From positions 1,674,001-1,738,000 of the forward strand of contig MU008160.1 in assembly GCA_010909165.1 (NCBI GenBank): 64,000 nt of DNA, read 5' to 3'. Shown in pieces: positions 993 to 54,140 of this stretch. The stretch comes from Anthoceros angustus. Taxonomy: Eukaryota > Plantae > Anthocerotophyta. The position numbers and the translations under genes were made by a program. Under the pieces are notes generated by a model, which made no database searches, was not told where the DNA came from, and saw only the letters and a program-made list of their open reading frames with translations. How positions within the stretch are numbered: position 1 is the first letter of the stretch; each line of letters begins with the position of its first letter.

Positions 993-3900
993 CTAGAATA
1001 TTTCCCCTCTCCGCGGCTGGCCGGACGGCGGTTGGTCCCAACGTGATTCGCTCATTAGTCGTCCCGAAGCAGGAGTGGGACTTGGCGCCACTTGATACAT
1101 AGTCGCATAGCCGATGCCTGCGTGGTGAGGGGACACCGAATCCCTTCTGAATCTCTTGGGATCGTCTTGCGTTTCCCTCTGCGTGTGGCTCCTCCTCGTC
1201 GGGGATGTCTTGGGATCGTCTTGCGTTTCCCTCCGCGTGTGGCTCCTCCTTGTTGGGGATGTCTTGGGATCGTCTTGCGTTTCCCTCCGCGTGTGGCTCC
1301 TCCTTGTCGGGGATGTCTTGGGATCGTCTTGCGTTTCCCTCCGCCTGTGGCTCCTCCTTGTCGGGGATGTCTTGGGATCGTCTTGCGTCTCGCTCCGCCT
1401 GTGGCTCCTCCTTGTCGGGGATGTCTTGGAATCGTCTTGCGTCTCGCTCCTCCTGTGGCTCCTTGTCGGGGATGGGCTTCCAGGTCTCTTCTTATGAGAA
1501 TGACGACTCGTTGGTCTCCGGCTGCTGTGCCGTGGCGTTTCCTGCTCCTTGCTCTTGCTGGGCGCAGACCACGAGATATCTACGCCCAGCTCTCCCATCG
1601 CCTTTTCTATGCGGATTTGCAAGTCCTTCGCAGCAAGGTCAGCCTGTCGTTGTGGATCGCTCGGCTGTGTCACCCACCTGTTTATGTTGTCCTGTGGGAT
1701 CTCCATCCATCTGGCCTGAAACTGGGAGCTTGCGCCCACACCGATGTTGAAGCCTTGGTTTGACTTGACTGAAGGAGACAAAATTGTTGTCCTCTGCCCG
1801 GTAGGGTTGGAATTCGAACCTGAATCACTGGGAACAGAGGTGCGTGTCGGGGTTGCAATCCTTGCATGGTGGATTTCTCTAGGGCCCACCCGGACCTCGT
1901 CCTGCCCTGCCTTGTCCACCTCGCCGGGTTTAGTGATTCCGCGGTCTTCAACCACCTGCATGACATTTCCACATTCTGCATCCTGGGGCTCTGCTGAAGT
2001 CCAAAGATGACTTGTCAGCCGGACCTGAGGTTCTTCTCCTTCAGGCTTTTGCTCCCTTGCAAAGGTCTCTGTTGCACCTGCGAGGACAAGTTCAGCATTG
2101 CTTGCAATAGACAGTGAGCTGATTGGATCAGTTGGTGTGCTGTGCGGTTCTGTACTAGCATCACGTGAGCTGTCACCCTCCGCAGCAAGCCAACCAGGGG
2201 TCACATCGTCTGCTTCCAGACAATGGTAGCTGTCCCTGACCTGCTGAGGTTGGGAATGAAATGGTCGAGGAGCTGGAATGTCGGAGGCAGCCCACGGATC
2301 AAGTGTTGGACGACCGTACTCCCAAGGTGGCAGACCTTGACAAACTGGAGGGCCCGGATAGGGTGATGGGAAGGCAGGCCGAATCGGCCACTGAGAAGCT
2401 GGCCCAACTGGTGAACAGAATAGTGCTTGCCTAGGATCTCCGAGGTGGACAGTAGGGTCCTGACGGAATTGGGATGGTGGTCCAAAGCAAGGCGTAGGTG
2501 GATATGATGGCCTAGGATCTCCAACGCGGATAGGAGGTTCCTGACGGAATTGGGATGGTGGTCCGAAGCAAGGCGTAGGTGGATATGGTGGCCTAGGATC
2601 TCCAAGGTGGACAGGAGGTTCCTGACGGAATTGGGATGGTGGTCCGAAGCAAGGCGTAGGTGGATATGGTGGTCTAGGATCTCCAAGGTGGACAGGAGGT
2701 TCCGGACGGAATTGGGATGGTGGTCTGAAGCATGGCGTAGGTGGATAAAAGTCTCTCTCCCAAGGCTGGCGTTGTCTGCCGAAACCACTGAAAGGATTTC
2801 CAGGTCCGACTGGTTGCGGGTCCTGCCAATGAGGTGGAGGGCCAAAACTTCCAAAAGCCTTTTCCAGTTCCGCGTGTCGAGCCTGGTCGTGCATGTGGGC
2901 CAGCATTGGCTGCTGGTTCTCCCAGTTGGAAGTGGTGGCACCAGTCACATGGAACGGCTCGATGACCAGCTGATTGCCGGCCAGTACTAGCGGCCTGGTC
3001 AGGAATGTCAAGGCCTTAACAGCTCCTGGCTTCCTCAGCTGTGCCTTCGCAGAATCTGCACCGCCGTCGTATTCCAGATGTTTTAAGATGCACTTCCCTT
3101 TCTCAAGCAAACCAGCCTGTGCCAGTGCCACCTCGAACACCTCAGCTAGGGCTCCGGTTACAGGAGCTGGAGTGAGGCTTTTCCCCAAACCCCTCACGAG
3201 GACAAAGTTTTCTGTATCCTTCGTACTTTTCTCCAAGCCTTGTCCTCTGGATATCACGTTAGACCCTTCCTCAGCCTTGGTAGACTCCCCTGCGTAGATG
3301 GCGCCAGGACGGACATATTCGCCATGCCTTGTCAAGGTGAGCGGGACACTGCTAGCACTGAACTCTGCTGTACTGTCAACATAGAACTCCATGAGGGTAT
3401 CCGCAAGTTCTTGAGAGGCTAATACTAATGAAACTCGACGCTTCGAGCTTTCTGATCCACGACTCCAAGAGACCCGTCTGAGCCCTTCTGGTTTGTACTT
3501 GCTGCCGGTGGCCTTCTTCAAGAGCTTTCTCACTTCCTGTTCAAGGTTCCCTAGAACATCACCAGGTAACTTTGGCAGATTGACCACTTCAAGTGTTGCC
3601 TGTGGGTTTGGTGGCTGACAGAAGGCAAGCAAAGGAACAAATCTCGCATGACGGCAGATGAATGTAGAGCTAGACAATATCTCCAAGGTGTGAGGATCTC
3701 TGGTCCCACACCTGTAGAAGAGAGCATCAGCAAGCGCCTCGGATGCAAGTTGCACGAAGACATCTGGGAGGTCTGGCTGTGAATACACTCCTGGCACCAG
3801 CTTTGCAACTTCATTGGAGTCCCTGTTCCTGGGAGGGCCATCGCCTACTATGTCTGCGAAAAATTTGCGGAGTGCAGTGGCATCCCGCCACTTTGGAGGA

Positions 3901-5863
3901 ACATTGCTGACCAAGACTGTGCCTGAAGGGGGCAAGCGCTGCTGCATAAACTGCCCCAGAAAGTGCTCCATGCAAGGTGCTCCTTTCGAAGTGTGAACCA
4001 CATACTTCCTGGCCGTCAACTGATGTCCATTCCAGACCATCTTCTCAGGCTCAGCTATACATGCATCCAGGAAAATGGCAGCAGCTGTTTCACTCTCAAA
4101 AGATATAGTGGCGTCGTCGTCTCTGTCAGTTGGCAAAGGGTGGATGCTGAACTGGTTGGTAGCGGTGGGAACCCAGTGAAAGCCAGAGAGAACGTTTTTC
4201 ACAATTCTTTCCAAACCACCTGTTGGCAGACCAAGCTTGCCACGTATGTAGATGGACTTCGAATCATCCCACACCCCAAACGGTAGCGGTAAGTGACTTT
4301 GCACCAAAGGAGGAGGACCAAACCCAGGAGGAGGAGACACTCCTCCTCGAGCCGCAAGTGGTTCTGGCTTGGGCAAGATTAGCTCAAACTTCGCAGGAGC
4401 AATAACTGGAACCAAATCCACGTTATTGTTCAACGGTGCTGGAGTTTCTTCATTCAGAACAGGACCTGAAGCCGGTGTCATACCTGGGAACAACAATCTA
4501 CCAACTATCAGCAGCTTGAAAATGGCAAACATACACAGACTAAGCATTGCCAGCATGAAAACAGATACTCCAACCCACGTCAATGTGATCCAAAAAACAC
4601 CTGAGCAAGGCCTGAACGAATTGGGCGCCCCAGGTACAGCGGCTGGAGCCTGGGGCACGTTTGGGTCAGTAGAATCGGTATAAAAGGGTGGAACGAAGGC
4701 AACCCTCATGCCGGCAAATCGCTGTGCAAGCAAACTCTGAGGTCCCCGAACCTCGTCAGTTCTTCCGTCTTGTGCACCACCAGCCCTTGAGATCCAGGGT
4801 GCACCAGCCTCTGCACCTTGTGCACCTGCATTTGCTTGTGCGTTTCCATTTGCTTGTGACAATGCTGGTGCCTCTGTCTCTGGGTTTGGCTTGAGCTGTG
4901 GCTTGGGCTTGGGCTTGGGCTGTGGCTTAGGCCTTGACTTCGGCTCTGGCTTCACCTTACTCGTGGTACTCAGCTTCCCCTTGCCCCTCGCCTGTACCCG
5001 CTCAGAGTCTCCCACCCGTCTGACTGCACCTTCACAACCTTGAGCCCCGCCGAGGGAAGCTACATGCTGGCTCCCCTGCTGCTGATCTGCCCTAACAGGG
5101 TCTGCTACAGCCACCGGGCGGCTTGCATTAGGAGGCGGACTTTCAATCACGCCACTTGTCCTTCTTCTCTTGCGCTGGTACACCAGCGGCAACGAATCCT
5201 CCGCCTCAGCCTCCCCTCCTTGATCCCCTGCTTTCTCACCCGACCCGGTCCCCGCAGCACAGCCCGGCCCAGCCTGCTTCGAGTCCTTGCATGCACTGGT
5301 AGGTACCGAATTCCCGGTCCCCGACCGCAGATCCTTCGCAGCCAAACATTTGCCTGATTCCCCCCCGTGCGTAGAAGCCGAACAGTCCTGCACAAGCTCA
5401 AACAAGAACCCCACGTAATATCGATGTGTGCGCGTAGAACCACACGTACCAGCATTGAAGTTCTGGTGCTCGTGCTCAGCATGGAGGCCCCGGCTACATA
5501 CCTTGCCGACATGGTTGTCACTGGATCCATGAAGGATGGTGTCCACAACAACCGAGTACTCGTCCTGCTTGATGAATTCCCAGCCGCCCTCCTTGTAGAC
5601 CTGCAAACGATACTCCAAGTCCACAATAAACGCATTCTCCGTCTCTCCGAGACAAGCGAACCACCACCACTTAGTACCTTTCTCCGTCTCTCCGAGCCAA
5701 GAAAATCACCATTACCACCTACCTTGCGCAACTCCGCAAGTGCGTTCAGGATCGCGTCCTTCTCGAAGCCCATTCCCTCCAGATGCTCCACTGCAATTGC
5801 TGTGCGCTCGGCGGCCTTGCGAGATAGTCGCCGCCCGGCGCCAGGAGCCCTGGGAGGTGCCAT
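993..5863 (-). CDS. WIYLD-domain + four divergent RRM protein with Pro-rich and Arg/Ser-rich repeat tail (paralog 1, about 1505 aa)
   Basis: Exons 5863-5723, 5600-5502, 5387-4601, 4483-993, all GT-AG with consistent phase. The spliced N-terminus RTAIAVEHLEGMGFEKDAILNALAELRK|VYKEGGWEFIKQDEYSVVVDTILH fits the WIYLD pattern. Four RRM-like units lie at about 4265-2950. Core is homologous to 29543-35724. Confidence 0.8.
1155..1475. repeat. Coding tandem repeat, 54-nt unit, about 6 copies (RRSHTRRETQDDPKTSPT)
   Basis: gggatgtcttgggatcgtcttgcgt recurs at 54-nt spacing (1202, 1256, ...). ETQDD occurs six times in the translation. Confidence 0.95.
2430..2750. repeat. Coding tandem repeat, 81-nt unit, 4 copies (PPYPPTPCFGPPSQFRQEPPVHLGDPR)
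   Basis: cctgacggaattgggatgg starts at 2459, 2540, 2621 and (variant) 2702. Confidence 0.95.
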
Positions 5864-6453
5864 GGGGTTTCCACCTGCCTGCGGAGATAAATTCGTCCCA
5901 AAGGTCACCTGACGATTGCCGGAAAGAGCTTGGAGTCGGCCATCGCCTTCTCTCGTGAGCTCCAAATTTGAAGAAACCTTGGCGGCTGCAGACGGGGCGT
6001 GATGATGAGAGAAACGTGCCCGAGCACATCCTGTTCCCGTTAAGAGAAGAGACGGACCCGCGATTTTCACGATCCGTCGAAAGGTCAGTTACTGCGACGT
6101 ACTCCCGCTCCGGCTCCGGGCGTGAAGCGCGCGGCGTGTGTTACGCTCACTTGAGCCGACAAGACGCCGAGGCGATGGCGAGAGACTTGCTGATCGAAGA
6201 ATTCGAGACTCTGTGAATTCCTGGATACCCTAGAAGAAATCAAGCGAGCTTCTGATCGGTCATGAACTCGCGAAGATCGGTCATGAAGTCGCGAATCAAC
6301 ATGGATGTCAGTCTCCTGAATCTTGAGCACGAAGAGCGAAGCGGCAGCTACAAGCGCTGGCAGTGACTGACTGCCTCAAGACTCCGAGTCGGACCGCTCC
6401 CGCTTGCGCCCGGCGTCTTTTTCCAGGCACATTCGGGACGTCTGCTTCGGAGA

Positions 6454-29542: not shown

Positions 29543-32500
29543 TTATCTTTCGGGACGGTAACGCCTGCGAGTATCTCTCACCTCATCAAAGCTGCGATTT
29601 CGTCTGTATAAATGTCTGTCTTCGTCTACGCTCTTGGCATCTCTAGACGATTGCCTGTCATCGTCTAAGATCCTGGCATCCGGCCAACGACTGGAGCTGG
29701 ATCGAGGCATTGTGCTGGACCTGTGTAAAGAGCTGTACTTTGATCTTCTGTCATCGGAGTCATGCCTACTAGTCTTCCTGTGGAGCCTGGGCTCATCAAA
29801 GCTCCTTCTCGAGTGGTCAGCATCACCTCGGTCAGGCCTTCTGTCGTCACGGTACGAGGTATGATTCCTTCGGCTGTCCCTCGGTGGTGACCTGCGAGAT
29901 GGTGACTCATCTCTTCTCTTGTAGTCAAGAGACTGCTGTCTAGAATTTCCTTTCTCAGCTGAAGAAGGTCGCTTGTGTTCTACGTCTGCATCCCTGACAG
30001 GCTGGTGACTGGTACTCTTCTTGTTGGGGAGGCTGCTATGTGGCTCCGCACACTCTTCGCGGACAGGAGTGAGCCCACCAGGACTTTCGACCATTATCTC
30101 ATTCAGATCAAACTTCAGTACATCACGTTGGCGAGGTGGACTCTTCCTGCATGCTGAATCCACGGTACAGGCAGCGTCCTTGTGGTCCGGTTCTAGCTTC
30201 ATGTCTTCGTCCTGGTTGCATGCGAGCTGGGTTGTAGAGTGCTGCTCGGCTCCAGGAAGGCCTGGTCCTCCTTGCCCAGGCTGTCCTGCATGCTTCCTGT
30301 CATCACAGTCGAACTTCACCCCCGGATGACATCCGCTTGTGATGGAAGTTCTGGTCCGTAGTTTGTCCTCTTGCTCGTTCATAGCAAACCCTAGACCCTC
30401 CTCGCAGTCCCTGTCACATTCAACCACCCCAGCTCCACATACCAAGATTCCCTGTTGTCCTGAAGCTTTATTGATTTGACCACAGTTGCGTCCCATGGCA
30501 CATACATCTTTGCTAACTTGCAGATTTTGGGCACTATCTTGTTGGGGTCCAGGATTCTTATCTTGCCATAAATTAGATGGCAAAGATTTTCCGTCCTCCT
30601 CATCATCCTCCTCCGCCTCCAGCCAACCCCCAATTCTCTTCTTCACTATGTCTTCTGTGATGTCTTGTATCCTGGGCTTCTTCTGTCTAAAGTCGTCAGA
30701 CTCGAGCCGTCCTTCCGGAGGACTTCTTTTTCTGTTAAGTGGGGGAACCCCAGCAAATTCTGCATCTGGGACCTTGGCTTCTTGACCTCCGACTGCTTCA
30801 GGATTAGAACTTTGATGACCTGCGTGCTCAGGATTGCCTTCGTAATGCCATGTGGGGTGAGGTCCTGGCCTCCAGGGCGGCACTAAGGCCCCTCCAGGTG
30901 GATCTGAATACCCTGGTGGCGGTGAGCAAAATGGAGGAGCCCTTGGTGCAGGGGGCCTGCCATAGTCGGGAGGAGGGTATGGTGGCAGGGGAGGCCCCAT
31001 GCCTCTAGGAAACGAGGCGTCTGGAGCGACTTGCGGTCCAAATCTGGGGGGAGGTCGGCCCCAGGGCTCCGCACCCCAACTACCAAGTGGAGGTGCCAAC
31101 TGCACGCTGGCTCTGGGAAATCCCCAGCGTAATCTCATAGAGGAGGGATCCGATAGACCTTGAGGTGCTCCCTGCTCAAAACTTGGCACTTTCTTTTGGG
31201 CATCCAAACATGCTTGACCTCGACTATCACTTTTCGAGGGATGAAGAGTCAGCCTTTCTCCTCCCAGCTTGAGTGGCATACGACATTGTAGAAGAGCTCG
31301 AGCCACGTCAGACCCACTGACAGTCACATATGGCTCAGACCCAAGTGATACGCTCCTGACAACTTGCATTTCAGGCTCCAGCACACCGGACTTGCACAAC
31401 GCTCTCTCAAACAGCTCATTCAGAGCACCTCTTAAGGCAGGCTCGAATACCCCTCGGGCCAATCCTTTCAAAGTCAGGCTTTTGGGTCCCTCCAGTTGCG
31501 AGCGCTTCATTTCCTTGAAGAAATCTGAGCGAAGAGTGCTACTGGCACAATCATTTGGCCCCATCATAGAGCCCGAAACGCTCGAGGAGTTGGCTTTCTC
31601 AGGTTTGAGCGACTTCCTGCTAGCAGAATCAGACGGACCAGTGTCTACTTCAGGCCCGTGCTCAACCTCCTCAATAACACCACCTCTCCAATCGAGGTCA
31701 TCTTCAAAAGCTCTCCCAGAAGCTGAATCACCATTTCTTGTGGAATGCCTATATATTGCACCAGGACGAATATACTTCTGGTGCCTGAAAATGCGAAGTG
31801 GCATGTCTTTTATACAAAAGGTCTGCACTTTGTCAATGTACTGGTCCATGACGGCGTCCGCTACCACCTCTGAATCGAAGTCGATATAAGCAAACGGTTT
31901 TCCGGGAGGCCAAGAAAAGTTCCTGATGCTTCCATGAATCTTTTTCTCTATACTCAAAGTTCGTAGAACTGCTTCAAACAAATCCTTCAGTCTTTGAGTG
32001 AAGTAGCCATCACCTGTGATAGGAAGCCTTGCCAAATAAAGAGTGCTTTGGTCACAAAATTCCTTGACAGATACGGTTTCCCGAGGGGATATACTATTCG
32101 GTGCAGTACGAGGCCTTCCTAAAAATCGAGCAGCACATAGTGGAACCCACTTAGGATGACGACAGAAGAAGGTGTTTTCACCCAATGCCTCAAGCAGCTT
32201 CGGATCCTTGGTGCACTTGTAAATCAAAGCATCCGCCAAAGCCTGTGAGAAAAGCTCAAGATACGCGTCAGACTGAGAAGGAAGGAGATAAACTGCGCGC
32301 ACAAGGTCGCTCTTCAAGTGCTCATCTGAGCCCTTCAGAATGTTTGAGAAATAGCGTCTCAGAGCCGTCTCGTCTTGCCACTTTGGAGTTACATTGGCGA
32401 CATAAATAACCTTCAGAGGATCCAGGTTCCGGTCTCTAGTTTGGGGGAAAAGCTTGTTCCGCTGTAAGGTGTCACCACTGGGATCCTGATTGTTCCTCCC

Positions 32501-35500
32501 CACCTTCAAGTAACACCCATTCAAAGGTAATGCAGCTGGATCAGCTTGACAAGCATCAAGGAAAACCATGGCAACCTTCGGTGTAGAAAATTCGGCAAAC
32601 CCAAAATTGAAATGGTGCCTCTCACGTAGATAGACCTCCTCCAGACGAGCCATCTTCTGCGGAACAAATTCGAAGGAGTTTAATAACGTGCGTACAACCT
32701 GTCTTACAGACGCCTCGAGATCTTTTAGTCCCTTGGGAATATTTCCCAGGTAGAGAGACCTTATTGGATCAGCCAAATGCGACGACATGCCACTGCCAGT
32801 AACATTGTCTCCCGAAGACCCTGCTCCTCTCCCGTCAGTGACAACTGCACGTCCAGGTACGTTGCCATGCACTTCAACTGCGATAGGTGTGCTTGCTGAC
32901 GAGCATTCAGGTATTTTCTGCTTTTCCACACCCATATGAGATGGTTGAGCCACACCCTGCTTTCGAGGTGGTGGGGCTGTTCCACCGACAGGAGTGAAAC
33001 CAAAAGCAGCAGAAGAAGAGGGCCCAGTAGGAGCTGAGAGACCAGGGCAGGCAGCAGCAGGTGGACATGGAACATTCACATGTTGGCCATGGTCAGGCAG
33101 AGGTGAAACGTTAGGAGTTGGAGTCCCAGACAGCATTCCTCTCAAACTTCCAGTCAACGACGGTCGGATCTGATCCGTCAGAGGAGGCAATTCTGGATCA
33201 GGAGTTGATACAGTCCCTGCTCACATATAACACAAAGAGATTGGTGGTTCTCCAACAACGGTGAGGCAGAGCACCGACAGGAAGACTCGAAAAAGCTCTA
33301 AACATATCGGTACCTGATACATTAGGAGGGTGGCACACTCCAGGACAGTTCGGAGTAGGAGGAAGGGTGTTCTTTGTGGAATTACCAGCTTTGGAAGCTG
33401 AAAGGTGAGGATGGCTTCCTGCCATGGACACCGAGATTCAGCAAGCAAACAGGCCAAACGATGGGCAGAAGATAGGATCTTACAAGGGGAAAGAGATGGA
33501 GAACCTGAGGAATCTGGAGGAAGCCAGGTAGCCGGCCAGGTTGGTATGGCATTTGGCGTTCGCGGGGATACACCTTGCGAGGCAGGATATGCTTCACAGC
33601 TGCCCGTTGCATGTGCTGCACAATCTGGAAGGTTGTTCTCTGCTTTCGCTGAGGCAGGAACATCATCCGAATCTGTCTGTGAGCCGTCTTTATGCAACTG
33701 CTCTTTACCATTGGAGGAACAAGCAGTAGTCTGCACAACCGCATCACCAGAGGAAGCCCTCCTTGCAGAAACCTGAGGACCATTCTCTGATCCTTTCACA
33801 CAAGCTAACCTCCTGCCTGGTGATGAATCTTCTTGTGACACCATACAAGCAAACTTCCCCTCAAATCCAGGAGGGAGACGGGGAGAATGTAGAGGTAGCA
33901 CATCTTGATCACCTGATTCCTTCTTTTCGTTAAATAAGGGCTTGGATTCGATGGCATCCAGAGGGCGAAGAGGTGACGGTTTAGAACTGTCTTGCACTTG
34001 AACCTTTGGTTCAGGAGGGAGTGGGATACGTTCCTGCCTGACTGGCTCGGGTTTACATAACTGTGCCTCCTGTGCAGTCAGTTTCACAGACTTCTGTTCG
34101 GTGCTTAGTTGCACAGAAGCTGGACTGATGTTCGACTTGCCGACATGGGTTCGGGCGCTATCTGCATCCAGCAGTTCAGGATCTTTGAGCCCGTTGGAAC
34201 CTGTTACGTTTTCCACATTTGGGCCAATGTCGGATTTTAAATCTGCTGAATTCTCTGTCGGTTCAGCCAGATGGGTTCGTGTGCTGAAGCCTTTCGTACT
34301 TGTTCCATTCGCACCATGTGGTACGATAGCACCTCTTGCTGTGGTAAAGCCACGGATTTTCCTCAGCATCCCAATCCCGTTCTCACCTGCTTTTCTTCTC
34401 TTGCTAGCAAGCTGCACCTCATTGTCCTCGGATATTATTCCTTCAGGCCTCCCTTCGGCCTCAGCTAAACCGAGTGACCGCTGCGCTGAGTCTGGACGAG
34501 CCTGCTGCTCAGGACAAAACTGGCCGAGACTGTCTGCCCGTCCAACAACTCCAGCTGACGATGCCCCAGCTTCATGGACGCTTTCATTTGACACAACACT
34601 GGGTGAAGGGTTTTCACCCACAGACCTGGAACCTTCAATGCTAGGCTCTGTCCCACAAGTTGCCTCACCCAAAGGGGGAGAACCCACTACAGTAACATCC
34701 TCAGTCTGCTTGCATACATCCCTTCCAAGAGAGGGACGGGATCTTTTCCCGCGAACCTTCACCTGGAACCCAGTTTCAAACGACTGAGACACACAGTTTG
34801 TGGCGGCATCATGGACGCCGTTATCATCACTTTTCACAGCGACAGAGTCAGGAACCGTCCCGCAGGAGCTATTCCCATTGCCACCCGACTTCACAGTACA
34901 GTCACCATCACTCCCTACCTCAGGCCCAGGCCCCTGCCCGGCCTCAGTCACATCCAGCACCGGCTGCTCCCCCTCATACGGCTCCCAGAAGCAAGGCAGA
35001 TTAGGCAAGCCGCACCTGACCGACCACAGGTGCCTCTGATGGCTACGTATATCCGGAGAATCCGGCGAATGCCCTTCAGGCGAGCCGCAGAAAACTGTCT
35101 GCTCCATCTGAGGCGGCACAACAGTTGCAGCCGCCTTTCCTGCACCACGCTGTAGGGTTCTGCTGCTATGTCGGCCATTTGCCGCCTTCCCATCTCGACC
35201 AGATCTCATTTGAGTCTTGCTCTGATCAACATAAAAAACGCTCATACATACATATATTCAAACGCTTTCGAAGAGCTTCCTTCCTCAACACAAAGTTCTT
35301 TTAGCCCTTACAGACGATAGAGACACAACCCGGGCCTCATAGATCTTGCCTCTGCTCCACCCTCTAACCACGACGCACCTCCCTCACCCGCTACCCTGCC
35401 GACCACTCCCCAACATTGACCACATACCTGCTTAAGGTTCTTGTCAGAAGTGATGCAATCAACCACAATCTGGTAGTTGTTCTCCTCAATATAACTCCAG

Positions 35501-35724
35501 CCAGCCTTAGGCCCGTATATCTGCATCACAAAACGACCATATCATCCACTCCATCCACTCCCACTCCCACTCCACTCCACATCACAGCACCAACACAACC
35601 AGCCGCTACGCACATCCAGGAGGTTCCGCACTGTCCAGGTGATGGAGGCCTTGGAGAAATTCCAGTCCGCATCTTGCAGCGATTGCACCACAGCTTCCAT
35701 GCGGCCGCGCTGCTCCTCCCTCAT
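29543..35724 (-). CDS. WIYLD-domain + four RRM protein with long disordered linker and RD/RS-rich tail (paralog 2, about 1900 aa)
   Basis: Exons 35724-35614, 35520-35428, 35221-33484, 33397-33314, 33216-29543, phases 0,0,1,1 consistent. Spliced WIYLD: RMEAVVQSLQDADWNFSKASITWTVRNLLD|IYGPKAGWSYIEENNYQIVVDCI. RRM1 has RNP2 LYLGNI and RNP1 FNFGFAEF; RRM3 has LYLARL and KPFAYIDF. Confidence 0.85.
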
Positions 35725-43877: not shown

Positions 43878-46800
43878 ATGTAACCTTGGAGGGTTGGGTG
43901 CTCGGCCGGTTGCTAGCAGTCGCTGGGGCCGTTGCTAGGGACTGTTGCTATAGCGGCAAGACTCGAGAACTGTTGCTATGGTAGCAACCAAGTCGGAGTT
44001 ATTTTCCGATAAATGGAAAACCTATTTGAGCGAAATCACGAAATACCCGAACGGAAGTAACGCGTCCTATTTCCAGTAGCGGGAAGAGACAAGGAATATT
44101 TGCGGCGAGGCGGGCGCGCCACCTCAAGCTCGAACGTGACTGGACGGAGGTCGGAGGAAACGCGGCCGAATGAGTCACGGCGCGCAGACGACGAGCGCAC
44201 TCAAGAGGGCCGAATCGGTGGAATGGCGGTCGGCGGATCGGCGGTGGCGGAGGCTGGAGAAGGCTAGGCGGGCGGCTCGGGTGTGGCGGCGAGGGCAGGC
44301 GGAGCAGAGGGCAGTGGAGGCAGCTCGAAGGTGCGGCGTGGGCGGGCAATGGGAAGTAAGCAAGCGGGGCGGAATTACACCCCAATGAGAATGTCGGGCG
44401 TGCGGCTCTGGAGAAGGCTAGGCGGGCGGCTCGTGTGGCGACTGCGCCGCAAGAAGCTAAGAAGAGCAGGCAAGTCGGATGGGAAGTCGGCCGAGGAGGG
44501 TGCAGAGGAAAAGGGTGCAGGCGGTCATGGTAGTGGCACGCACCACAGGAGGTCGCGGACAAGGGCAAGACAAAGCGCGAGGTCCTGTCTGCAGTGGTTG
44601 CGGATACACCTCCAAGCCTCTGCAGGTACACCAAGCCTCACACAACCGAGGTAGGGTGGCGGCAGCTGGCAGCGGCGGTGTATTGGCATGAGGATAAGAA
44701 CGGGGTTTCAATTCGGAGGGTCGGGGTCTTGTGGACCACAGCGGATGAAAAATTTACAACAAAGGCGATCTAAACACCGTGGATCTTCACGGTACATTAA
44801 GGAACGCTTTGCAACTTGAGTTTCGACCCTCAACGCGTCCTTGCTTATGTAAGGTCTGTCACAAACCTCGGACTCCACGCTCGCACCCCCATTCGCCAAC
44901 ACCTCATTGTTAGATTGATCGTTAACCTAGCATAGTTAGGTGCCAACTTATGTGAAACACCACACACTTACATTTTTGTTCATAATGCTTAACCCCCGAG
45001 ATTCATTCGTTCTAATTGCCTTCGCACTCACTTTCTTTCTCCTAGCTCATTGCTCTTCATGTCGCTTGCATTGAAACCTCCGCTCTAAATCATAAGATGG
45101 TATCGAGCTTGGATCCGCATGATCGTGTGACACTAATCTCGCACTTTGGGTTTAGTGTTTGATTAACATTAATTAATCTAATTACTTATCTCTAAGTAAG
45201 TAATTAATATTAATTAATCAAGTGTTTATGTTAATTAAACGTTGATTAGTGTTAATTAAACATGGTTAGCAATAGCTAAGTGGATAAGCTCAAGTAATAT
45301 GCTTTGGCATATTCCTTGCATATTATAGTGTATTCTTAGGATATTTCCATATCGATGCCGATAGGATTTCTTAGGAATATGCCGATGCCAAGGGCTAGTA
45401 TATATAGACCCTTCCATTGTGGACAAGCTCGGATCATAGCTTGTCCTGACTCAGGAGGCGATGTGAGGAATTTGCGTGTCGTTCTCATGGGGAGAGTGTG
45501 TTTGTGCGATGTGAAGCTACTCCTCCTGTTTCTTCAAGCTATGATCTCTTTTTGTGTACGCTAGATAGGCGTGCTAGGATAAGCTTGCTAGGCTTAGTGT
45601 GCTCGTGGTGTGCGGCGTGCTAGGTGATGCTATATGATGCTATGCTAGGCTTAGTGCGCTAAGCGATGCTAGGTGACGCTAGGCGGCCTTCTCTTTAAGC
45701 AAGTAGGCAAAGGACCCTCTAAAGTATGCCCAAGGCTTGAGGCCAAGGGAGAAGAAGCCCAAGTCCAAGGAGAAGAGGAGAAGAAGCCCAAAGTCCAAGG
45801 AGAGGAGGAGAAGAAGCCCAAAGTCCAAGGAGAGAAAGGGTTTGGCCTTTTAAGGACAGCCAACCAAGAGAGAAACAAGAGTATTTTACTCTTGGGCGCC
45901 GGATTTCAAGGGATAAGCGAGGAGTGGATAGGCATGGGTATGTCATCAATCCATTTGATTTCACTTTAAGCACCCCAAGAGCAGAGCACCTCGGTTCTGG
46001 ATGGGGTGCTAGCCAATGAAGAGTTTTGGACGGTGAAATCAAATGGATTGATGACATACCCATGCCTATCCACTCGCTCGCTATCCTGAACCGGCCCAAT
46101 GTAACCTTGGAGGGTTGGGTGCTCGGCCGGTTGCTAGCAGTCGCTGGGGCCGTTGCTAGGGACTGTTGCTATGACAACCTCAGAACTGTTGCTATGGTAG
46201 CAACCAAGTCGGAGTTATTTTCCGATAAATCTGAAAACCTATTTGGGCGAAATCACGAAATACCCGAACGGAAGTAACGCGTCCTATTTCCAGTGAAGAG
46301 ACAAGGAATATTTACGAGGAATCAAGGCGCCACACCTCAAGCTCGGGCGTGGCCGTGGGCGGAGGCTGGAGAAAGCGGCCGGCGTCGCGGAGTCGCGGCC
46401 CGGCGTGGCACTCGAGAAGAGAATCGGGTGGAATGGCGGTCAGGCGGATCTGGCGGTGGGAGGCAGGCGGTGTCGGGCAGCGGCACCCGGCAGGCGGCGG
46501 GCGAAGTGCAGTGGGCAGCTCGAAGGTGCGGCGTGGGCGGGCAATGGGAAGTAAGCAAGCGGGGCGCCGCGTGGCGGGGAGTAATGTCGGGCGTAGCTCC
46601 ACAGAGAAGGCTAGGGCGGCTCGGGTGTGGCGTGCCGCAAGAAGCTAAGAAGAGCGAGCAAGTCGGATAGGCCAGTGAAGGCCGTAGGAACCAGGAAAAG
46701 GGAAGTGCAGGCGGTCATAAGCGGTGGCACGCACTCGGGAGGTCGCGGACAAGGGAGCCAGCCGGTCCTGTCTACCGTGGTTGCGGATACATCCAAGCCT

Positions 46801-47134
46801 CTGCAGGTACACCAAGCCTCACACGCAGGTAGGGGCTGGCCGAGGCGGGCGGTGTATTGGCGGTCGGAGGATAGGGGGTTTCAATTCCGGAGGGGTCGGG
46901 GTCTTTGAAGTCGGGACCGAAAATGGAAGGATAGGCATGGGTTGAATCAATTGAGAGTCGAGGATTGTCAGCGCTTTCCAAATCTGAGTGGTCAGGCGGG
47001 ACACCCCGCCATCGTGAAGTTGGAAGCCGAGCGGTGTTTCCAGGGGATCCTCGGTCAAACAGCGAGCTAAGCGGAAATTTGGATGGGAAGTCGGCCGAGG
47101 AGGTTGATACGAGCAGTGGACAGGGAATCTTGAG

Positions 47135-48744
47135 GTGGGAAGTGCGGTGGTGCATCACGATGGCGGGACTCCTTACTGTGAAACTGAGCCACGCCACAGT
47201 CGAAGCATGGCCCCTAAGAAGACCACTCCGGTGGCCATTGAGGCCATTACCAGCATCAATGGCCCAACATGGGGCAATCGGAGAGTGAAGGCGGGGTCTT
47301 TGGTGGCTAAGCATCACTTGTCCTTCATGGACAAAAAGTGGTGCTACAATAGCCTGCGTTGGTTTGGGAGTGTCAGGGGCACATGAGGAGAAGGCCACGG
47401 GGAAGGCAACACGAGAACCAACCCCGCACTGGAATATTCATTGTTCCAGTCTATGAGAGGCTGAAGAGGAATGTGGTGGAATAATCATTGATCCTTTCGT
47501 GAAGCCATCTCCCAAAAGTCAGGAGGCACAAGTCGCCATTGCTCCCACATTGTCTAGGGTGGAGAATGGTGGGTCACCAACAAGTTAGACCACTGGCGGA
47601 TTAGCCAAGTGGATCCTGCTCTCACTCACTAAGAAGCTAGAGCACATTGTCGACCATTTTCTTGTCTTTCTCTATGAGGTGGTGAGAGGGTCCAAGATAG
47701 ATTGGGCTAGGATGTTCTATGACACAGCAGGGAGAGGGACCACTTGACCCTACCATCACCCTCCCTATCTCCCTTCTTAATCCACGTTTTTGACCATGCC
47801 AAGTTCTTTGGAGGATAGAGATGGTCTCGACCTTCCATGCCCGGAGGCCGGTGTTTGAAAGAAGGAAGCCCAAAGAGGAGTCGAGGAAGAGGCCATCTCC
47901 GGTGCTGGGGAGTGAAGATGAGAAGTCAAGTGTCCATGAAGAGGAATGTGGCGTTGCTAAGGTGTCGGCCGGTTGCTAACAAAGCAACTGGAGTTGCTAA
48001 GACTCCAGGCACCAAGAGAGGTCGGTGAGCAGGGGACTCCAACCACTCCTAGAGCCACAAGAGCACGACCGGGAACTCACCCGGATGTAAGGTGACAAAG
48101 GAAAGGCCGAGCAGCACGGTTGCGAGCGTGGCGGAAGCCAGTCAACAGGAGGAATCGCCCAACCTTGGGCACGGCCGAGCCGACCCGAGAAAGTCACTAC
48201 TGCTCAAGGGGTGACCTCAAGTATACCCGGAAGTGGTCGCAGGGAGAGCCGCGCCAGATAGGAAGGAGGGAACCCATCCCAGTGGGGTTTGGGGCCTAAC
48301 ATCACCCTACAGGGTCTCGGCTATGGCACGCACTAGGTGAGATGGAGGACCGATAGCTCGGTCCTCTCTTTGTTAGGTTCTGGTAGCGGCAGGGGAACAA
48401 CAGGGAGGCGGTAAAGGAGCTCCAGAATGAAGCAGGAGAAGGAGGTCTTGGAGGGGCGCCTAGGTAGCATGGAAGCGGAATTAAGGAAGATCCGAGAAGA
48501 GTTGCGGAAGTCCAAGGATCAGGAAACCCTCATGGTTCAGCTCTCGGACGCACAAAGCACCATAGGGGAGCTGCAGAATGTCATCTCAGATGCAAGTTCA
48601 GGCCGAAACCGCGGATGCCCTGGGCGCTACAAGAAGGAGAGGGACGAGGCAAGGAAAGGTTGGAAAGAGGCCAAGAGGGCCAGGATTGCAAGGAGAGCCA
48701 CCGTGGAAGATGCGGAGCCTCCATGGAAGAATCATTCGAGTTAG
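47135..48744 (+). pseudogene. Fragmented non-Copia ORF (plant transposon accessory-ORF-like segment plus coiled coil)
   Basis: Stop-broken reading includes LVFLYEVVRGSKIDWARMFYD (about 47660-47725) and a heptad-rich KQEKEVLEGRLGSMEAELRKIREEL (48427-48744). Family assignment is tentative. Confidence 0.35.
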
Positions 48745-48884
48745 CAGCGGAGGAGGTTGCTAAGCAAGCAAGCCGCTAAGGAAGCAACAACTCCACTGCT
48801 AAGGGAGCAACAGCTCCAAGACCGAGCTACAACAAGGAAGAAGGGGCAACAAGACCGGAGGAGGACAAAGCAGGCCGGGAGGCG

Positions 48885-51800
48885 GGTAAGCACCGCCTAA
48901 GAAGTCTAACTTCCCAATGGTGCATTAGATTGAGGATGCTTATCAAGATAACCATGTGCTGGATTCTCCTTGGCTGAGAGAAGATTGTCTCCGAAAGTTT
49001 ATGTTGTTGTGGGCACAGGGGGGACATGGAGGTACTTGATCCATGCCTTGACGGGCACTGGATCCTACCTATGGGTTGGATTCTTAAGGAGGAAACTCTC
49101 AGCCGACCCATCCAGGATTCAAGAGCTCACCGAGGAGGAGTACCAGACTATGCGGCGAGCACAAGAGAGAGAGGAGTCCAGCTCTGAGGAGGTAGAGATT
49201 TTATGGGAGAGATTGCCCAACCAGCCAAGAGGGAGGAGAGCAAGAGGAGAACATGGGGCTAGGCGGCCTAGGAGGCCCAGGAGAGGTAATAGGGGTAAGT
49301 GGCCCTGAAATAGCTAAAGGCCCATGTGTTATAGACTGTAAATCTTATCCTCTCTCATAGTGGACAGAATTGATAGATAGGCCTCTAGGATTGGTAGGCT
49401 AAGACCGATTGGTATTTTTGGCAAGCCAAGCCGCTTTGTGGGTCGATCTTGGGTATAAGAGGCACTTGATGAAATGTAAGCAATGTTGGCCTAAGTCTCG
49501 GTGTTTGGGGTGAGCACGGGGTTTGGGAGGGTTCCAGATCCAGTCTTTGTAAGCCTAAACCGTTCCTCAGAGGAAGACTACTGTTGCCCAGATCCGTGTG
49601 GCCGATCCGCAAGAGTGGTGGAAAGCAAGGAGGGAGCCTTGTGATCTCCTTGGAGGAGTCCTCAAGGTCAAGAGGAAGGGGTCGGGAAGCCGGGAGGCTG
49701 TCCCTCCTTTACTCATTCTCTGCGGTTTGTCTAGTACTCACCTTGTGTTTAAGTTTTTCAGTGTCAAGGTCGCAGGAGAGAAGACAAGGCGGGAGCCGTG
49801 TGTGTGAAGGAGGAAGTCAAGTGAGTGAGTGTGGGCTTGTGGGTTTGGAAAATGAGAGGAAAAGTGAGCCGTAAGAGAAGTGGAGAATCTTTGGGCATGG
49901 AGAGTTGCTGATTGGCTGTTTGAGAGGAGTAAGAAGGGCTGGAAGTCTGTAAGAGATGGTTGTGTTCTTGAAGAGAGAGAGAGAGAGGAGTCGAGGAGGT
50001 TGAAGATCCGTGAGTGGATGAGACGGAATGATTGCGAGAGAGATGAACAAGCATTTTGAGAGTTGGTGAAGTCTGTAAGGGCCTGGATGAGAACCTTGTA
50101 AGGACTGGAAGTGTTGTGAGTGGAAGTGGAGGTCGAATGGGGGAGTGAGAACAAGGAGGTTGAGAGAGTTCTGGGAACTTGGAGGTGTGATGAAAACACA
50201 AGGTGTTGGTATGGGTTGGAAGGTGAGCTGAAAGGCTGGAGAGGGGCAAGGAAGTCAAGTGAGTCAGGTTGGGCTTGTGGGTTTGGAAAATGAGAGGAAA
50301 AAGTGAGCCGTAAGAGAAGTGGAGAATGCTGGGCATGGAGAGTTGCTGATTGACTGTTTGAGAGGAGTAAGAAGGGCTGGAGAAGTCTGTAAGAGATGGT
50401 TGTGTTGCTGAAAGAGAGAGCTGTGAGTGGGGGTTGAAGATCCCGTGAGTGAGTAAGACGGAATGATTGCGAGAGAGAGATGAACAAGCATTTTGAGAGT
50501 TGGGAAAGTGCTGTAAGGGCCTGGATGAGAATCTCGTAAGGACTGGGAAGTGTTGTGAGCTGTGGAAGTGGAGGTCGAATGGGGCAGTAAGGAGTGAGAA
50601 CAAGGAGGGTTGAGGGGAGTTGCTGGGGAACTTGGAGAGTGTGATGAAAACCTGAAGGTGTTGGTATGGGGTTCGGAAGGTGAGCTGAAAGGCCAGAGAG
50701 GGGGCAAGGAAGTCTGAAGAAGTGCTGCAAGAGTGAGAGGTGGAGGGGAGTTATGAGAGCGGTAAGCACCGCCTAAGAAGTCTAACTTCCCAATGGTGCA
50801 TTAGATTGAGGGATGCTTATCAAGATAACCATGTGCCCGGATTCTCCTTGGCCGGAGAGAAGATTGTCTCCGAAAGTTTATGTTGTTGTGGGCATGGGGG
50901 ACATGGAGGTACTTGATCCATGCCTTGACGGCACCGGATCCTACCTATGGGTTGGATTCTTAAGGAGGAAACTCTCACCGACCCATCCAGATTCAAGAGC
51001 TCACCGAGGAGGAGTACTGCATCATGCGGCGAGCACAAGAGAGAGAGTCCAGCCGAGGAGGTAGAGATTTTATGGGAGAGATTGCCCAACCAGCCAAGAG
51101 GGAGGAGAGCAAGAGGAGAACATGGGGGCGCCTAGGAGGCCTGTGAGAGGTAATAGGGGTAAGTGGCCTGAAATAGCTAAAGGCCCATGTGTTATAGATC
51201 AGAATCTTATCCTCTCTCATAGTGGATGTAATTGATAGATAGGCCTCTAGGATTGGTAGGCTAAGACCGATTTTTGGCAAGCCAAGCCGCTTTGTGGGTC
51301 GATCTATAAGAGGCACCTTGATGAAATGTAAGCAATGCAAAGTCCTGGCCAATGAGCACGGGGTTTGGGAGGGTTCCAGATCCAAAGGTCGAAGCCTAGG
51401 CACCGCTCCTCCCCAAGAAGACTACTGTTGCCCAGATCCGTGTGGCCGATCCGCAAGAGTGGTGGAAAGCAAGGAAGGGAGCCTTGTGATCTCCTTGGAG
51501 GGAGTCCTCAAGGTCAAGAGGAAGGGGTCGGAAGCGGGAGGCCGTCCCTCCTTTACTCATTCTCTGCAGCTTGTCTAGTACTCACCTTGTGTTTAAGTTT
51601 TCTGAGTGTCAAGGTCGCAGGAGGAAGAAGACAAGGCGGGAGCCGTGTGTGGAGGAAGTCAAGTGAGTCGGGCTTGGGCTTGTGGGTTTGGAAAATGAGA
51701 GGAAATGAGAGGAGAGAAGTGGAGAATGGAGAGTTGCTGATTGCTTGAGAGGAGTAAGGGCTGGAAGTCTGTAAGAGATGGTTGTGTTCTTGAAGAAGAG

Positions 51801-52136
51801 AGGTGAGTTGAAGATCCCGTGAGTAAGACGGAATGATTGCGAGAGAGATGAACAAGCATTTTGAGAGTTGGTGAAGTGTAAGGGCCTGGATGAGAACCTG
51901 GGGAAAGGCTGGAGTGTGGAAGTGGAGGTCGAATGGGCAAGAGGGAGGAGAACAAGGAGGTTGAGAGAGTTCTGGGAACTTGAGAGTGATGAAAACCTCA
52001 AGGTGTTGGTATGGGTTGGAAGGTGAGCTGAAAGGCCGAGGGGGCAAGGAAGTCTGAAGAAGTGCTGCAAGAGTGAGAGGTGGAGGGGAGTTATGAGAGC
52101 AGTAACCCTGATTGGTGGATCTAACTTTGTGGATGA

Positions 52137-52172
<36 letters not shown>

Positions 52173-54140
52173 AGCCTTATCCACTTGGATCCCGAATTGG
52201 GTCCCACCATTCTATTAATAGCCCGACCTGATCCCAAGGTGGCCCCCCCTCTGCTAGAAATAGAGGGTGGTTGCTAAGTTAGCAAGATCATCCGTTCGGG
52301 GTGGCATCGAGGTCGTGGCTAAGATAGCCAGTCAGTGTTGTTAGGGGAGTCACAGTGCATGGCGCTAGATGTTTTGGTGTGTCCGTGTTTGGTTGGATTG
52401 GCTATGTTTTGGTTGTCTTGACACGAAATCACTCCCTTGGGTACGAATCTCAAGTCTACAACGATAAAGAGGGTAAATGTGGCCTCTTTGTGACCACTTG
52501 GTTTAGAAAATCACTCCACAATAATCCAAGACCTCAACATTGGTCTTAGTCAAATGAGTCTTAGGTATCTAAAGGGACAATTACTTATGGCTTTCGGGAT
52601 AATAGCCCACTTGTGTCCATTATCGACTATGCATGCCGATTGGCATCTAATCCGGACTAGCGGAGCATCTCGGCTTATTGTTTTAAGTTGTCAAATGGGG
52701 CGATTAATTTGAGCTCTAAAAGCACTCGATGGCTCTTTCGTCCACAAGGGCCGAATATGACCAGTCTTTGTAAGCCTAGGCACCGTTCCTCTGCCACAGT
52801 GAGAAGACCTGTTGCCCAGATCCGTGTGGCCGATCCGCAAGGGTGGTGGAAAGCAAGGGAAGGGAGCCTTGATCTCCTTGGAGGGAGTCCTCAAGGTCAA
52901 GAGGAAGGGGTCGAAGGAGGAGGCTGTCCCTCCTTTACTCATTCTCTGCAGTTGTCTAGTACTCACCTTGTGTTTAAGTTTTTGAGTGTCAAGGTCGCAG
53001 GAGAAGAAGACAAGGCGGGAGCCGGTGTGTGTGAAGGAGGAAGTGAGTCAGGTGTGGGCTTGTGGGTTTGGAAAATGAGAGGAAAAAAGTGAGCCGAGAG
53101 AAGTGGAGAATCTGGACATGGAGAGTTGCTGATTGGCTGTTTGAGAGGAGTAAGAAGGGCTGGAGAAGTCTGAGATGTTGTGTTCTGAAGAGAGTGAGTG
53201 GAGGTTGAAGATCCGTGAGTGGAGATGGAATGATTGGGGAGAGAGATGAACAAGTATTTTGAGAGTTGGTGAAGTCTGTAAGGGCCTGGATGAGAACCTT
53301 GTAAGGACTGGAAGTGTTGTGGCTGTGAAGTGGAGGTGAATGGGGCGTGGAGTGAGAACAAGGAGGTTGAGAGAGTTCTGGGAACTTGGAGGTGTGATGA
53401 AAACACAAGGTGTTGGTATGGGTTGGAAGGTGAGCTGAAAGGCTGGAGAGGGGCAAGGAAGTCAAGAAGTCTTGCAAGAGTGAGGAGGGGAGTTATGAGC
53501 GGTAACCACGATTGGTGGATCTAACTTTGTGGATGAGTAGAGAGAGAGAGAGAGAGAGGTCAGCTTATCCACTTGGATCCCGACTGGGACCCACCCCTAT
53601 TAATAGCCGACTGATCCCAAGGTGGACCCCCCTAGAAATAGAGGTGGTTGCTAAGTTAGCAAGGTCATCCGTTCGGGGTGGCATCGAGGTCGGCGTGGCT
53701 AAGATAGCCCGAGTGTTGTTAGTGATCACAGTGCATGGCTAGATGTTTTGGTGTGTACTGTTTGGTTGGATTGGCTATGTTTTGGTTGTCTTGACACGAA
53801 ATCACTCCCTTGGGTACGAATCTCAAGTCTACAACGATAAAGAGGGTAAATGTGGCCTCTTTGTGACCACTTGGTTTAGAAAATCACTCCACAATAATCC
53901 AAGACCTCAACATTGGTCTTCCGTCAAATGAGTCTTCCGGTATCTAAAGGGGACAATTACTTATGGCTTTCAGGATAATAGCCCACTTGTGTCCATTACT
54001 GACTATGCAGATGCCGATTGGCATCTAATCCGGACAGCTAGCGGAGCATCTCGGCTTATTGTTTTAAGTTGTCAAATGGGGCAGTTAATTTGAGCTCTAA
54101 AAAGCAGACCTCGATGGCTCTTTCGTCCACAAGGGCCGAA
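48885..54140. repeat. Interleaved internal duplications (X Y X' Y' Z Y'' Z') with purine-rich about 440-nt repeats and (AG)n tracts at about 52140-52170 and 53537-53557
   Basis: cggtaagcaccgcctaagaagtc at about 48885 and 50760. gaagtcaagtgagt..gggcttgtgggtttggaaaatgag at about 49813, 50251, 51655 and 53040. gattggtggatctaactttgtggatgag at about 52110 and 53510. Confidence 0.88.

Follow-up and report, generated by a model that had tools for sequence, protein, structure and literature searches.

The window analysed here is a 64,000-nucleotide (nt) stretch of the Anthoceros angustus genome (Anthocerotophyta; contig MU008160.1, positions 1,674,001 to 1,738,000). It is eukaryotic and plant-like, with a G+C content of approximately 50%, and carries two related genes on its minus strand: gene 1, or member 1 (993-5863), with which this study is concerned, and its paralog, member 2 (29543-35724). 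Gene 1 encodes an N-terminal WIYLD domain fused to four units of the predicted RNA recognition motif (RRM) fold. The predicted product comprises approximately 1505 amino acids, and its open reading frame (ORF) is intact. The exons and introns of gene 1 are as follows.

5863-5723, minus strand: exon 1, coding sequence for 47 amino acids, with the ATG at 5863-5861 and the end at ...AELRK; N-terminal half of WIYLD, helices 1-2 (translation, Pfam)
5722-5601, minus strand: intron 1, 122 nt, phase 0, AAG/GTAGGT ... TTTGCAG/GT; interrupts the WIYLD domain (sequence)
5600-5502, minus strand: exon 2, 33 amino acids; C-terminal half of WIYLD with the W, I, Y, V, D signature, GGWEFIKQDEYSVVVDTI (Pfam, alignment A5)
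5501-5388, minus strand: intron 2, 114 nt, phase 0, AAG/GTATGT ... GTGCAG/G; stop-free, a multiple of 3 (sequence)
5387-4601, minus strand: exon 3, 262 amino acids of low-complexity linker rich in A, G, P and S, with a basic RKRRR cluster and a K/P-rich stretch (composition, motif)
4600-4484, minus strand: intron 3, 117 nt, GT..AG, phase 1; stop-free, a multiple of 3 (transcript contig of a relative, sequence)
4483-993, minus strand: exon 4, 1162 amino acids and the stop codon; four RRM-fold units, proline-rich repeats, a disordered region and an R/S/T-rich tail (ORF)

The first-pass annotation had claimed that the WIYLD domain arises only by splicing at LRK/VY, joining 5723 to 5600, and consensus GT..AG sites were found at exactly this point. 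The site of intron 1 was likewise seen or inferred in the paralog, in contigs L001 and L003 from other species, and in Sphagnum gene models. An intron is also needed at the intron 2 site in L003, because the frame shifts there and a stop codon is present. Our transcript data consisted of Logan contigs, taken as RNA by guess, that cover gene 1 from 1261 to 4636; contigs of organism A matched this span with at least 99% identity and those of organism B, from several studies, with 90-95% identity. In a contig from run X10, representing a close relative, positions 4484-4600 are missing between minus-strand GT..AG ends, which demonstrates splicing of intron 3 in that relative.

A single open frame of 1543 codons runs from 5624 to 993 on the minus strand. 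Introns 2 and 3 are both stop-free and multiples of 3, so that 993-5624 reads as one ORF; retention of either intron would preserve the reading frame. This arrangement may be due to chance (approximately 0.3% by a crude estimate) or may reflect tolerated intron retention.

To identify the WIYLD domain, gene 1 was scanned exon by exon against the Pfam profile (PF10440; length 61, gathering score 27). Exon 1 matched profile positions 3-32 with 16 bits (E 0.011), together with weak matches to several UBA families, and exon 2 matched positions 35-57 with 25.3 bits (E 1.4e-5). The two matches are collinear, non-overlapping and complementary, and their simple sum is approximately 41 bits. Exon 1 was aligned with the matching exons of the paralog, L001, L003 and Sphagnum. 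The signature of exon 2 reads W..I....Y...VD; its W, Y and V are invariant in the five family members of alignment A5, and the last position holds D in gene 1 and either D or E in its kin.

The four RRM-fold units

An alignment of 24 family sequences (A3) served as input for an AlphaFold2 model (m1386adcfd160) and for a family profile. The model has a predicted local distance difference test (pLDDT) score of 82 and a predicted template modelling score of 0.61, and contains four b-a-b-b-a-b units, which are located in exon 4 as follows. A prediction from the two paralogs alone reached a pLDDT of 49.7 and was not used for the fold search.

4005-4256, minus strand: RRM-fold unit 1, model residues 17-100; spanned by Foldseek alignments to Prp24 and raver1
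3648-3920, minus strand: RRM-fold unit 2, model residues 129-219, pLDDT approximately 90; matched by the family profile to U2AF65 RRM1
3327-3596, minus strand: RRM-fold unit 3, model residues 237-326; VIA-align to U2AF65 RRM1 with Z 10.5 and a root-mean-square deviation (rmsd) of 2.2 A over 88 residues
2955-3206, minus strand: RRM-fold unit 4, model residues 367-450, pLDDT approximately 90; VIA-align to a nucleolin RRM with Z 9.7 and an rmsd of 2.1 A over 80 residues

A Foldseek search of the PDB ranked Prp24 first (E 1.6e-8), followed by raver1 RRM1-3, U2AF65, SFPQ/NONO, HuR and hnRNP A2/B1; RRM proteins made up almost the whole of the top 50, and the mitoribosome subunit chain at rank 12 is doubtful. 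VIA-align gave Z values of 9.7-11.3 to RRM proteins, with an rmsd of approximately 2.2 A per unit, and unit 4 also aligned with the La RRM. The Atlas shape search returned clusters of nucleolin, U2AF and RBM19. When the 24-sequence profile was compared with PDB sequences, the top matches were almost exclusively RRM proteins (CPEB4, RBM28, U2AF65 and PTB), with weak E-values; a profile of the two paralogs returned only noise. The language-model neighbours of the units were of the RRM, PARP14-RRM and NID types (scores 0.82-0.86), and unit 2 gave a weak Pfam match to PHM7_cyt, which we take to be an RRM-like family.

Because the model, Foldseek, VIA-align, the Atlas search and the family profile all point to RRM proteins, we regard the predicted RRM fold of the four units as confirmed. 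The first-pass annotation had described four RRM-like units; this description holds at the level of the predicted fold, but no match to Pfam RRM_1 (PF00076) was obtained when gene 1 was scanned whole and unit by unit. The orientation of the units relative to one another matches no solved protein (template modelling (TM) score approximately 0.2). Unit 2 is the best conserved unit of the family, with the motifs PKW, ADALxYxC and FxCR, and unit 4 carries a conserved helix, GALxExFExAL.

The paralog and its place in a larger family

The paralog has the same architecture as gene 1.

29543-35724, minus strand: paralog, member 2; WIYLD exons 35724-35614 and 35520-35428, a long linker exon and a four-unit module at approximately 32803-31211; canonical ribonucleoprotein (RNP) motifs

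Its ORF (29543-33190) matched gene 1 with 29% identity over 383 amino acids in tblastn (E 8e-41); this match covers units 1-3, and similarity is weaker over unit 4. The second WIYLD exon of the paralog (35520-35428) matched positions 36-57 of the Pfam profile with 23 bits. Three introns are equivalent in the two genes: one in phase 0 after ...LRK or ...LLD, one in phase 0 after exon 2, and one in phase 1 at ...S/G/.... The tblastn, Pfam and intron data thus bear out the earlier proposal of a paralog with shared architecture and equivalent introns.

That the two genes constitute the entire family, as was also proposed, is refuted by our profile search, run exhaustively over 1.84 billion representatives, which returned only 19 clusters but these across mosses, lycophytes and ferns. 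The named members belong to Sphagnum spp., Selaginella, Ceratopteris, Pteridium and Adiantum, each a moss, lycophyte or fern, and no seed-plant name occurred among the 19 clusters. Judged from these sequences, the family is an old one within non-seed land plants, and the four-RRM array forms its conserved core. A word search with residues 440-900 of the gene 1 ORF found no relatives, and one with alignment A4 found only a single family member (P0006, described below), probably through words from low-complexity parts.

The fusion itself is conserved in other species. The 926-amino-acid protein CAK9220416.1 of Sphagnum jensenii (P0042) contains a WIYLD domain at residues 10-72 that passes the Pfam gathering score in one piece (29.5 bits) and the four-unit module at residues 394-841; the language-model features of its N-terminus are closest to WIYLD clusters. 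Sister gene models in Sphagnum have an intron at ...ILK/LYK, the same point as intron 1 of gene 1. The closest kin of gene 1 is P0006 on contig L003 (45% identity, 99/99 tree support), where the RRM ORF is preceded, approximately 450 nt upstream, by both WIYLD half-exons. The closest kin of the paralog is P0005 on contig L001 (39% identity), where the WIYLD half-exons lie approximately 6 kb upstream of the module on the same strand. Unit 1 of P0005 passes Pfam RRM_1 (23.2 bits against a threshold of 20.7). A CCCH zinc finger (zf-CCCH) lies between units 3 and 4 in P0005 (residues 508-532) and P0022 (residues 37-61) and occurs in neither paralog of the window; its presence in some kin fits a role on RNA.

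In the P0006 ORF (L003:1319-3076), units 1-2 run into an AP2 domain (Pfam AP2, 40.6 bits) at the place expected for unit 3; the join could stem from chimerism of the Logan contig or represent a genuine RRM-AP2 fusion. Adiantum nelumboides (GCA_022343405.2) has an intronless 2220-bp ORF (P0002) with the module and no WIYLD, a short form that could be a retrocopy. Long forms of 1203-1379 amino acids with other N-termini occur in Ceratopteris and Pteridium as well. The Selaginella and Ceratopteris members are labelled 'RRM domain-containing protein' in UniProt.

Possible function of the fusion protein

Several known systems resemble parts of gene 1. The best structural match, Prp24 of the yeast U6 snRNP, likewise has four RRM folds in a chain, the last of which is non-canonical. 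Identity between gene 1 and Prp24, raver1, U2AF65 or nucleolin is 8-15%, however, with a different unit orientation (TM score approximately 0.2) and no Pfam-level homology; Prp24, unlike gene 1, has no WIYLD or UBA domain, and no orthology is implied. Export factors of the Mex67/NXF1 type combine an RRM with a C-terminal UBA that docks on a partner, and the UBA of yeast Mex67 binds ubiquitinated Hpr1; the RRMs and UBA-like module of gene 1 can be likened to this arrangement. The Mex67/NXF1 proteins differ from gene 1 in domain order, in having LRR and NTF2-like domains, and in the type of UBA, and have no sequence relation to it. The Sphagnum proteins CAK9220416.1, CAK9208081.1 and others have the four-unit module and a WIYLD split at the same place as in gene 1. 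The Sphagnum, fern, Selaginella and Ceratopteris members share 25-31% identity with gene 1 and are uncharacterised.

SUVR1, SUVR2 and SUVR4 (WIYLD-PreSET-SET) have, as gene 1 does, an N-terminal WIYLD with a W, I, Y, L/V, D signature, and both the SUVR proteins and gene 1 are plant-specific and likely nuclear. Gene 1 differs from them in having the four-RRM array instead of Pre-SET/SET; a Pfam scan of all ORFs of the two paralogs gave no SET or Pre-SET match at E values up to 10. Since Pre-SET/SET is absent and the rest of the protein is the four-RRM array, the product of gene 1 cannot be a methyltransferase, and a SET-type enzyme was rejected as a candidate.

SUVR4's WIYLD domain binds ubiquitin, for which residue D74 is required (PMC4260354). 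The signature Asp of exon 2 would correspond to D74, a correspondence judged without an alignment to SUVR4. The paper that named the domain in 2006 reported it only alongside SET or in proteins without other known domains and first proposed dimerisation as its role (PMC1636477). As far as titles and abstracts indicate, the 33 papers mentioning WIYLD deal with SUVR/SET proteins or gene-family surveys and describe no WIYLD-RRM protein, and the four among them in which RRM is mentioned too are surveys of this type; to the same extent, the remark in the first-pass annotation that it knew of no characterised WIYLD-multi-RRM fusion without SET still stands. The combination of WIYLD with four RRMs is a new domain architecture made from known parts, and one that is already present, unnamed, in public proteomes of Sphagnum.

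We propose the following mode of action. Only once intron 1 is removed would the N-terminus form the three-helix, UBA-like WIYLD domain, which would be followed by a disordered linker with the basic cluster, a compact four-RRM array, the proline-rich repeats and an R/S/T-rich tail of mixed charge. The RKRRR cluster of exon 3 is likely a nuclear localisation signal, judging by its sequence; a similar ...KRRR... motif occurs in L003. The RRM array would place the protein in a ribonucleoprotein, with unit 2 as the best candidate for a canonical RNA contact and units 1, 3 and 4 probably making non-canonical or protein contacts. WIYLD would bind ubiquitin or a ubiquitin-like surface of a partner, so that the protein as a whole would form a bridge from RNA or an RNP to chromatin or to a nuclear protein that carries ubiquitin. 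A WIYLD and four-RRM protein that is probably nuclear and links RNA or RNPs to a ubiquitinated partner is the best explanation of our data taken together, and we give it a slightly better than even chance of being correct.

Gene 1 offers a tangible candidate, one that can be cloned, for connecting ubiquitin signalling with RNA/RNP biology in bryophytes, although its practical value is modest for now. The presence of the fusion in several non-seed land plants shows that WIYLD was joined to RNA-type machinery early in land-plant evolution.

Several observations weigh against a ubiquitin-to-RNA bridge. None of the relatives' contigs, which span 1261-4636, crosses the WIYLD junction from 5723 to 5600, and each half of the domain alone scores below the Pfam gathering score. 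WIYLD point mutants of SUVR2 still complemented silencing (PMC4260354), indicating that the domain is not always functionally critical, and the fern members, several of them from transcript contigs, have no WIYLD, indicating that it is dispensable for the core function. To these are added the absence of an RRM_1 match in gene 1 and the state of its RNA-contact residues. The RNP2 and RNP1 motifs of units 1-3 carry aromatic residues, in member 2 as in the family consensus (SLYLGN and FGFAEF, VIYVAN and DAYLEL, and TLYLAR and FAYIDF, respectively), and the paralog and most kin retain these aromatics. The corresponding motifs of gene 1 are SIYIRG and DATISF, TVLVSN and DVFVQL, and TLEVVN and RVSLVL; two of the seven consensus aromatic positions are kept (the Tyr of RNP2 in unit 1 and the Phe of RNP1 in unit 2) and five are lost. 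Unit 3 of gene 1 has no aromatics in either motif, and unit 4 has none in any family member and is non-canonical throughout. With five of seven aromatics lost, canonical RNA binding is doubtful for units 1 and 3, and RNA binding by gene 1, as read from these residues, may be weak or non-canonical.

The erosion of the RNP motifs weakens the simple view of gene 1 as a four-RRM RNA binder and motivates the principal alternative, namely that the array is a pseudo-RRM scaffold, with at most one canonical RNA site, for contacts with proteins such as member 2 or a different RNP protein, and that WIYLD serves dimerisation or docking rather than ubiquitin binding. The loss of RNP aromatics in units 1 and 3 and their absence from unit 4 are consistent with such a scaffold. 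The same pattern, in which unit 2 is preserved while RNP1 of unit 1 and the whole of unit 3 are eroded, is found in P0006, Sphagnum and Selaginella; because it recurs in these members, it looks maintained rather than like decay. Dimerisation was, moreover, the role first proposed for WIYLD when the domain was named (PMC1636477). Unit 2, however, keeps its RNP1 aromatic and the most conserved motifs of the family, kin of gene 1 carry CCCH fingers, the RNP motifs of member 2 are canonical, and the signature Asp, taken as the ubiquitin-binding residue of SUVR4, is retained. On this evidence a pure scaffold appears unlikely, though it deserves serious consideration beside the bridging role that we prefer. 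The old pair of paralogs, one canonical and one with eroded RNA contacts, amounts to an experiment of nature on the conversion of RRM arrays into scaffolds.

Gene 1 might also be read as a duplicate of member 2 that is decaying towards a pseudogene: its RNP motifs are degenerate, its low-complexity regions have expanded greatly and its branch is long, and two contigs of a relative carry a 1-nt deletion at 3149. Approximately 1505 codons are nevertheless intact, and a separate, orthologue-like gene exists in P0006, whose grouping with gene 1 at 99/99 support indicates that the duplication is old. Gene 1 is alive: its reading frame is uninterrupted, a transcript of a relative has intron 3 removed, and the indels that separate the relatives' contigs from the window come almost entirely in multiples of 3. 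Pseudogene decay is thus very improbable, and we rejected it on the grounds of the intact codons, the old duplication and the splicing in a relative.

Equally improbable is that the WIYLD exons form a small gene of their own, with a fusion that exists only in our reading of the DNA: the relatives' contigs do give no coverage of 4970-6200, and WIYLD is known from proteins without other known domains (PMC1636477), but exon 2 is in the same 1543-codon frame as the RRM region and only 114 nt from exon 3, too short a distance to accommodate both a terminator and a promoter, and the linkage recurs in the paralog, L001 and L003, while Sphagnum gene models join the parts. A separate WIYLD-only gene was rejected on the strength of this shared frame and of the linkage in relatives.

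A bolder extension of the bridging role, which we offer tentatively and consider improbable in its full form, is that gene 1 and its kin represent a branch of WIYLD proteins without SET, predating the divergence between mosses and the lineage of the window, that couples a ubiquitin mark (on ubiquitinated histones or stalled RNP factors, for example) to nascent or regulatory RNA through the four-RRM array; member 2 would be the canonical RNA-binding partner and member 1 the degenerate, scaffold-like one. If this were true, a WIYLD reader without SET would constitute a chromatin-RNA link that is absent from seed plants, and it would possibly be the source of, or sister to, the WIYLD domain of SUVR proteins.

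Repeats, tail and other features of the window

Downstream of the RRM-fold units, exon 4 contains two tandem arrays.

2429-2747, minus strand: tandem 81-nt repeats, 3.9 copies; 27-amino-acid proline-rich repeats, PPYPPTPCFGPPSQFRQEPPVHLGDPR (TRF, translation)
1154-1474, minus strand: tandem 54-nt repeats, 6 copies with 95% matches; 18-amino-acid repeats of the R/S/T-rich tail, TSPTRRSHRRRETQDDPK (TRF, composition)

The last 190 amino acids consist of 18% R, 15% S and 13% T and include the six 18-amino-acid repeats and 11 RS/SR dipeptides. The tail had been described as Arg/Ser-rich; it is indeed rich in R and S, together with T, but its repeat is a unit of R, S, T and P with mixed charge rather than a classical RS domain. 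A classical SR protein was rejected as a candidate because the last 190 residues hold only these 11 dipeptides and the repeat is of this mixed-charge type.

The relatives' contigs break or diverge near the 81-nt array, with loose ends at 2882, suggesting that the number of repeats probably differs between species. The deletion at 3149 mentioned above lies inside unit 4 and was found in contigs of the close relative from runs X5 and X10. These contigs also break at 3651/3652, with approximately 28 unlike letters on each side; the relative could have an insertion or an additional intron here, or the break could be an artefact of assembly.

Elsewhere in the window, the region from approximately 46000 to 54000 has a strong positive GC skew of up to 0.45, and many long minus-strand ORFs composed of repeated serine/leucine/proline-rich units are present at 49738-53477. 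This region looks like a large repeat array.

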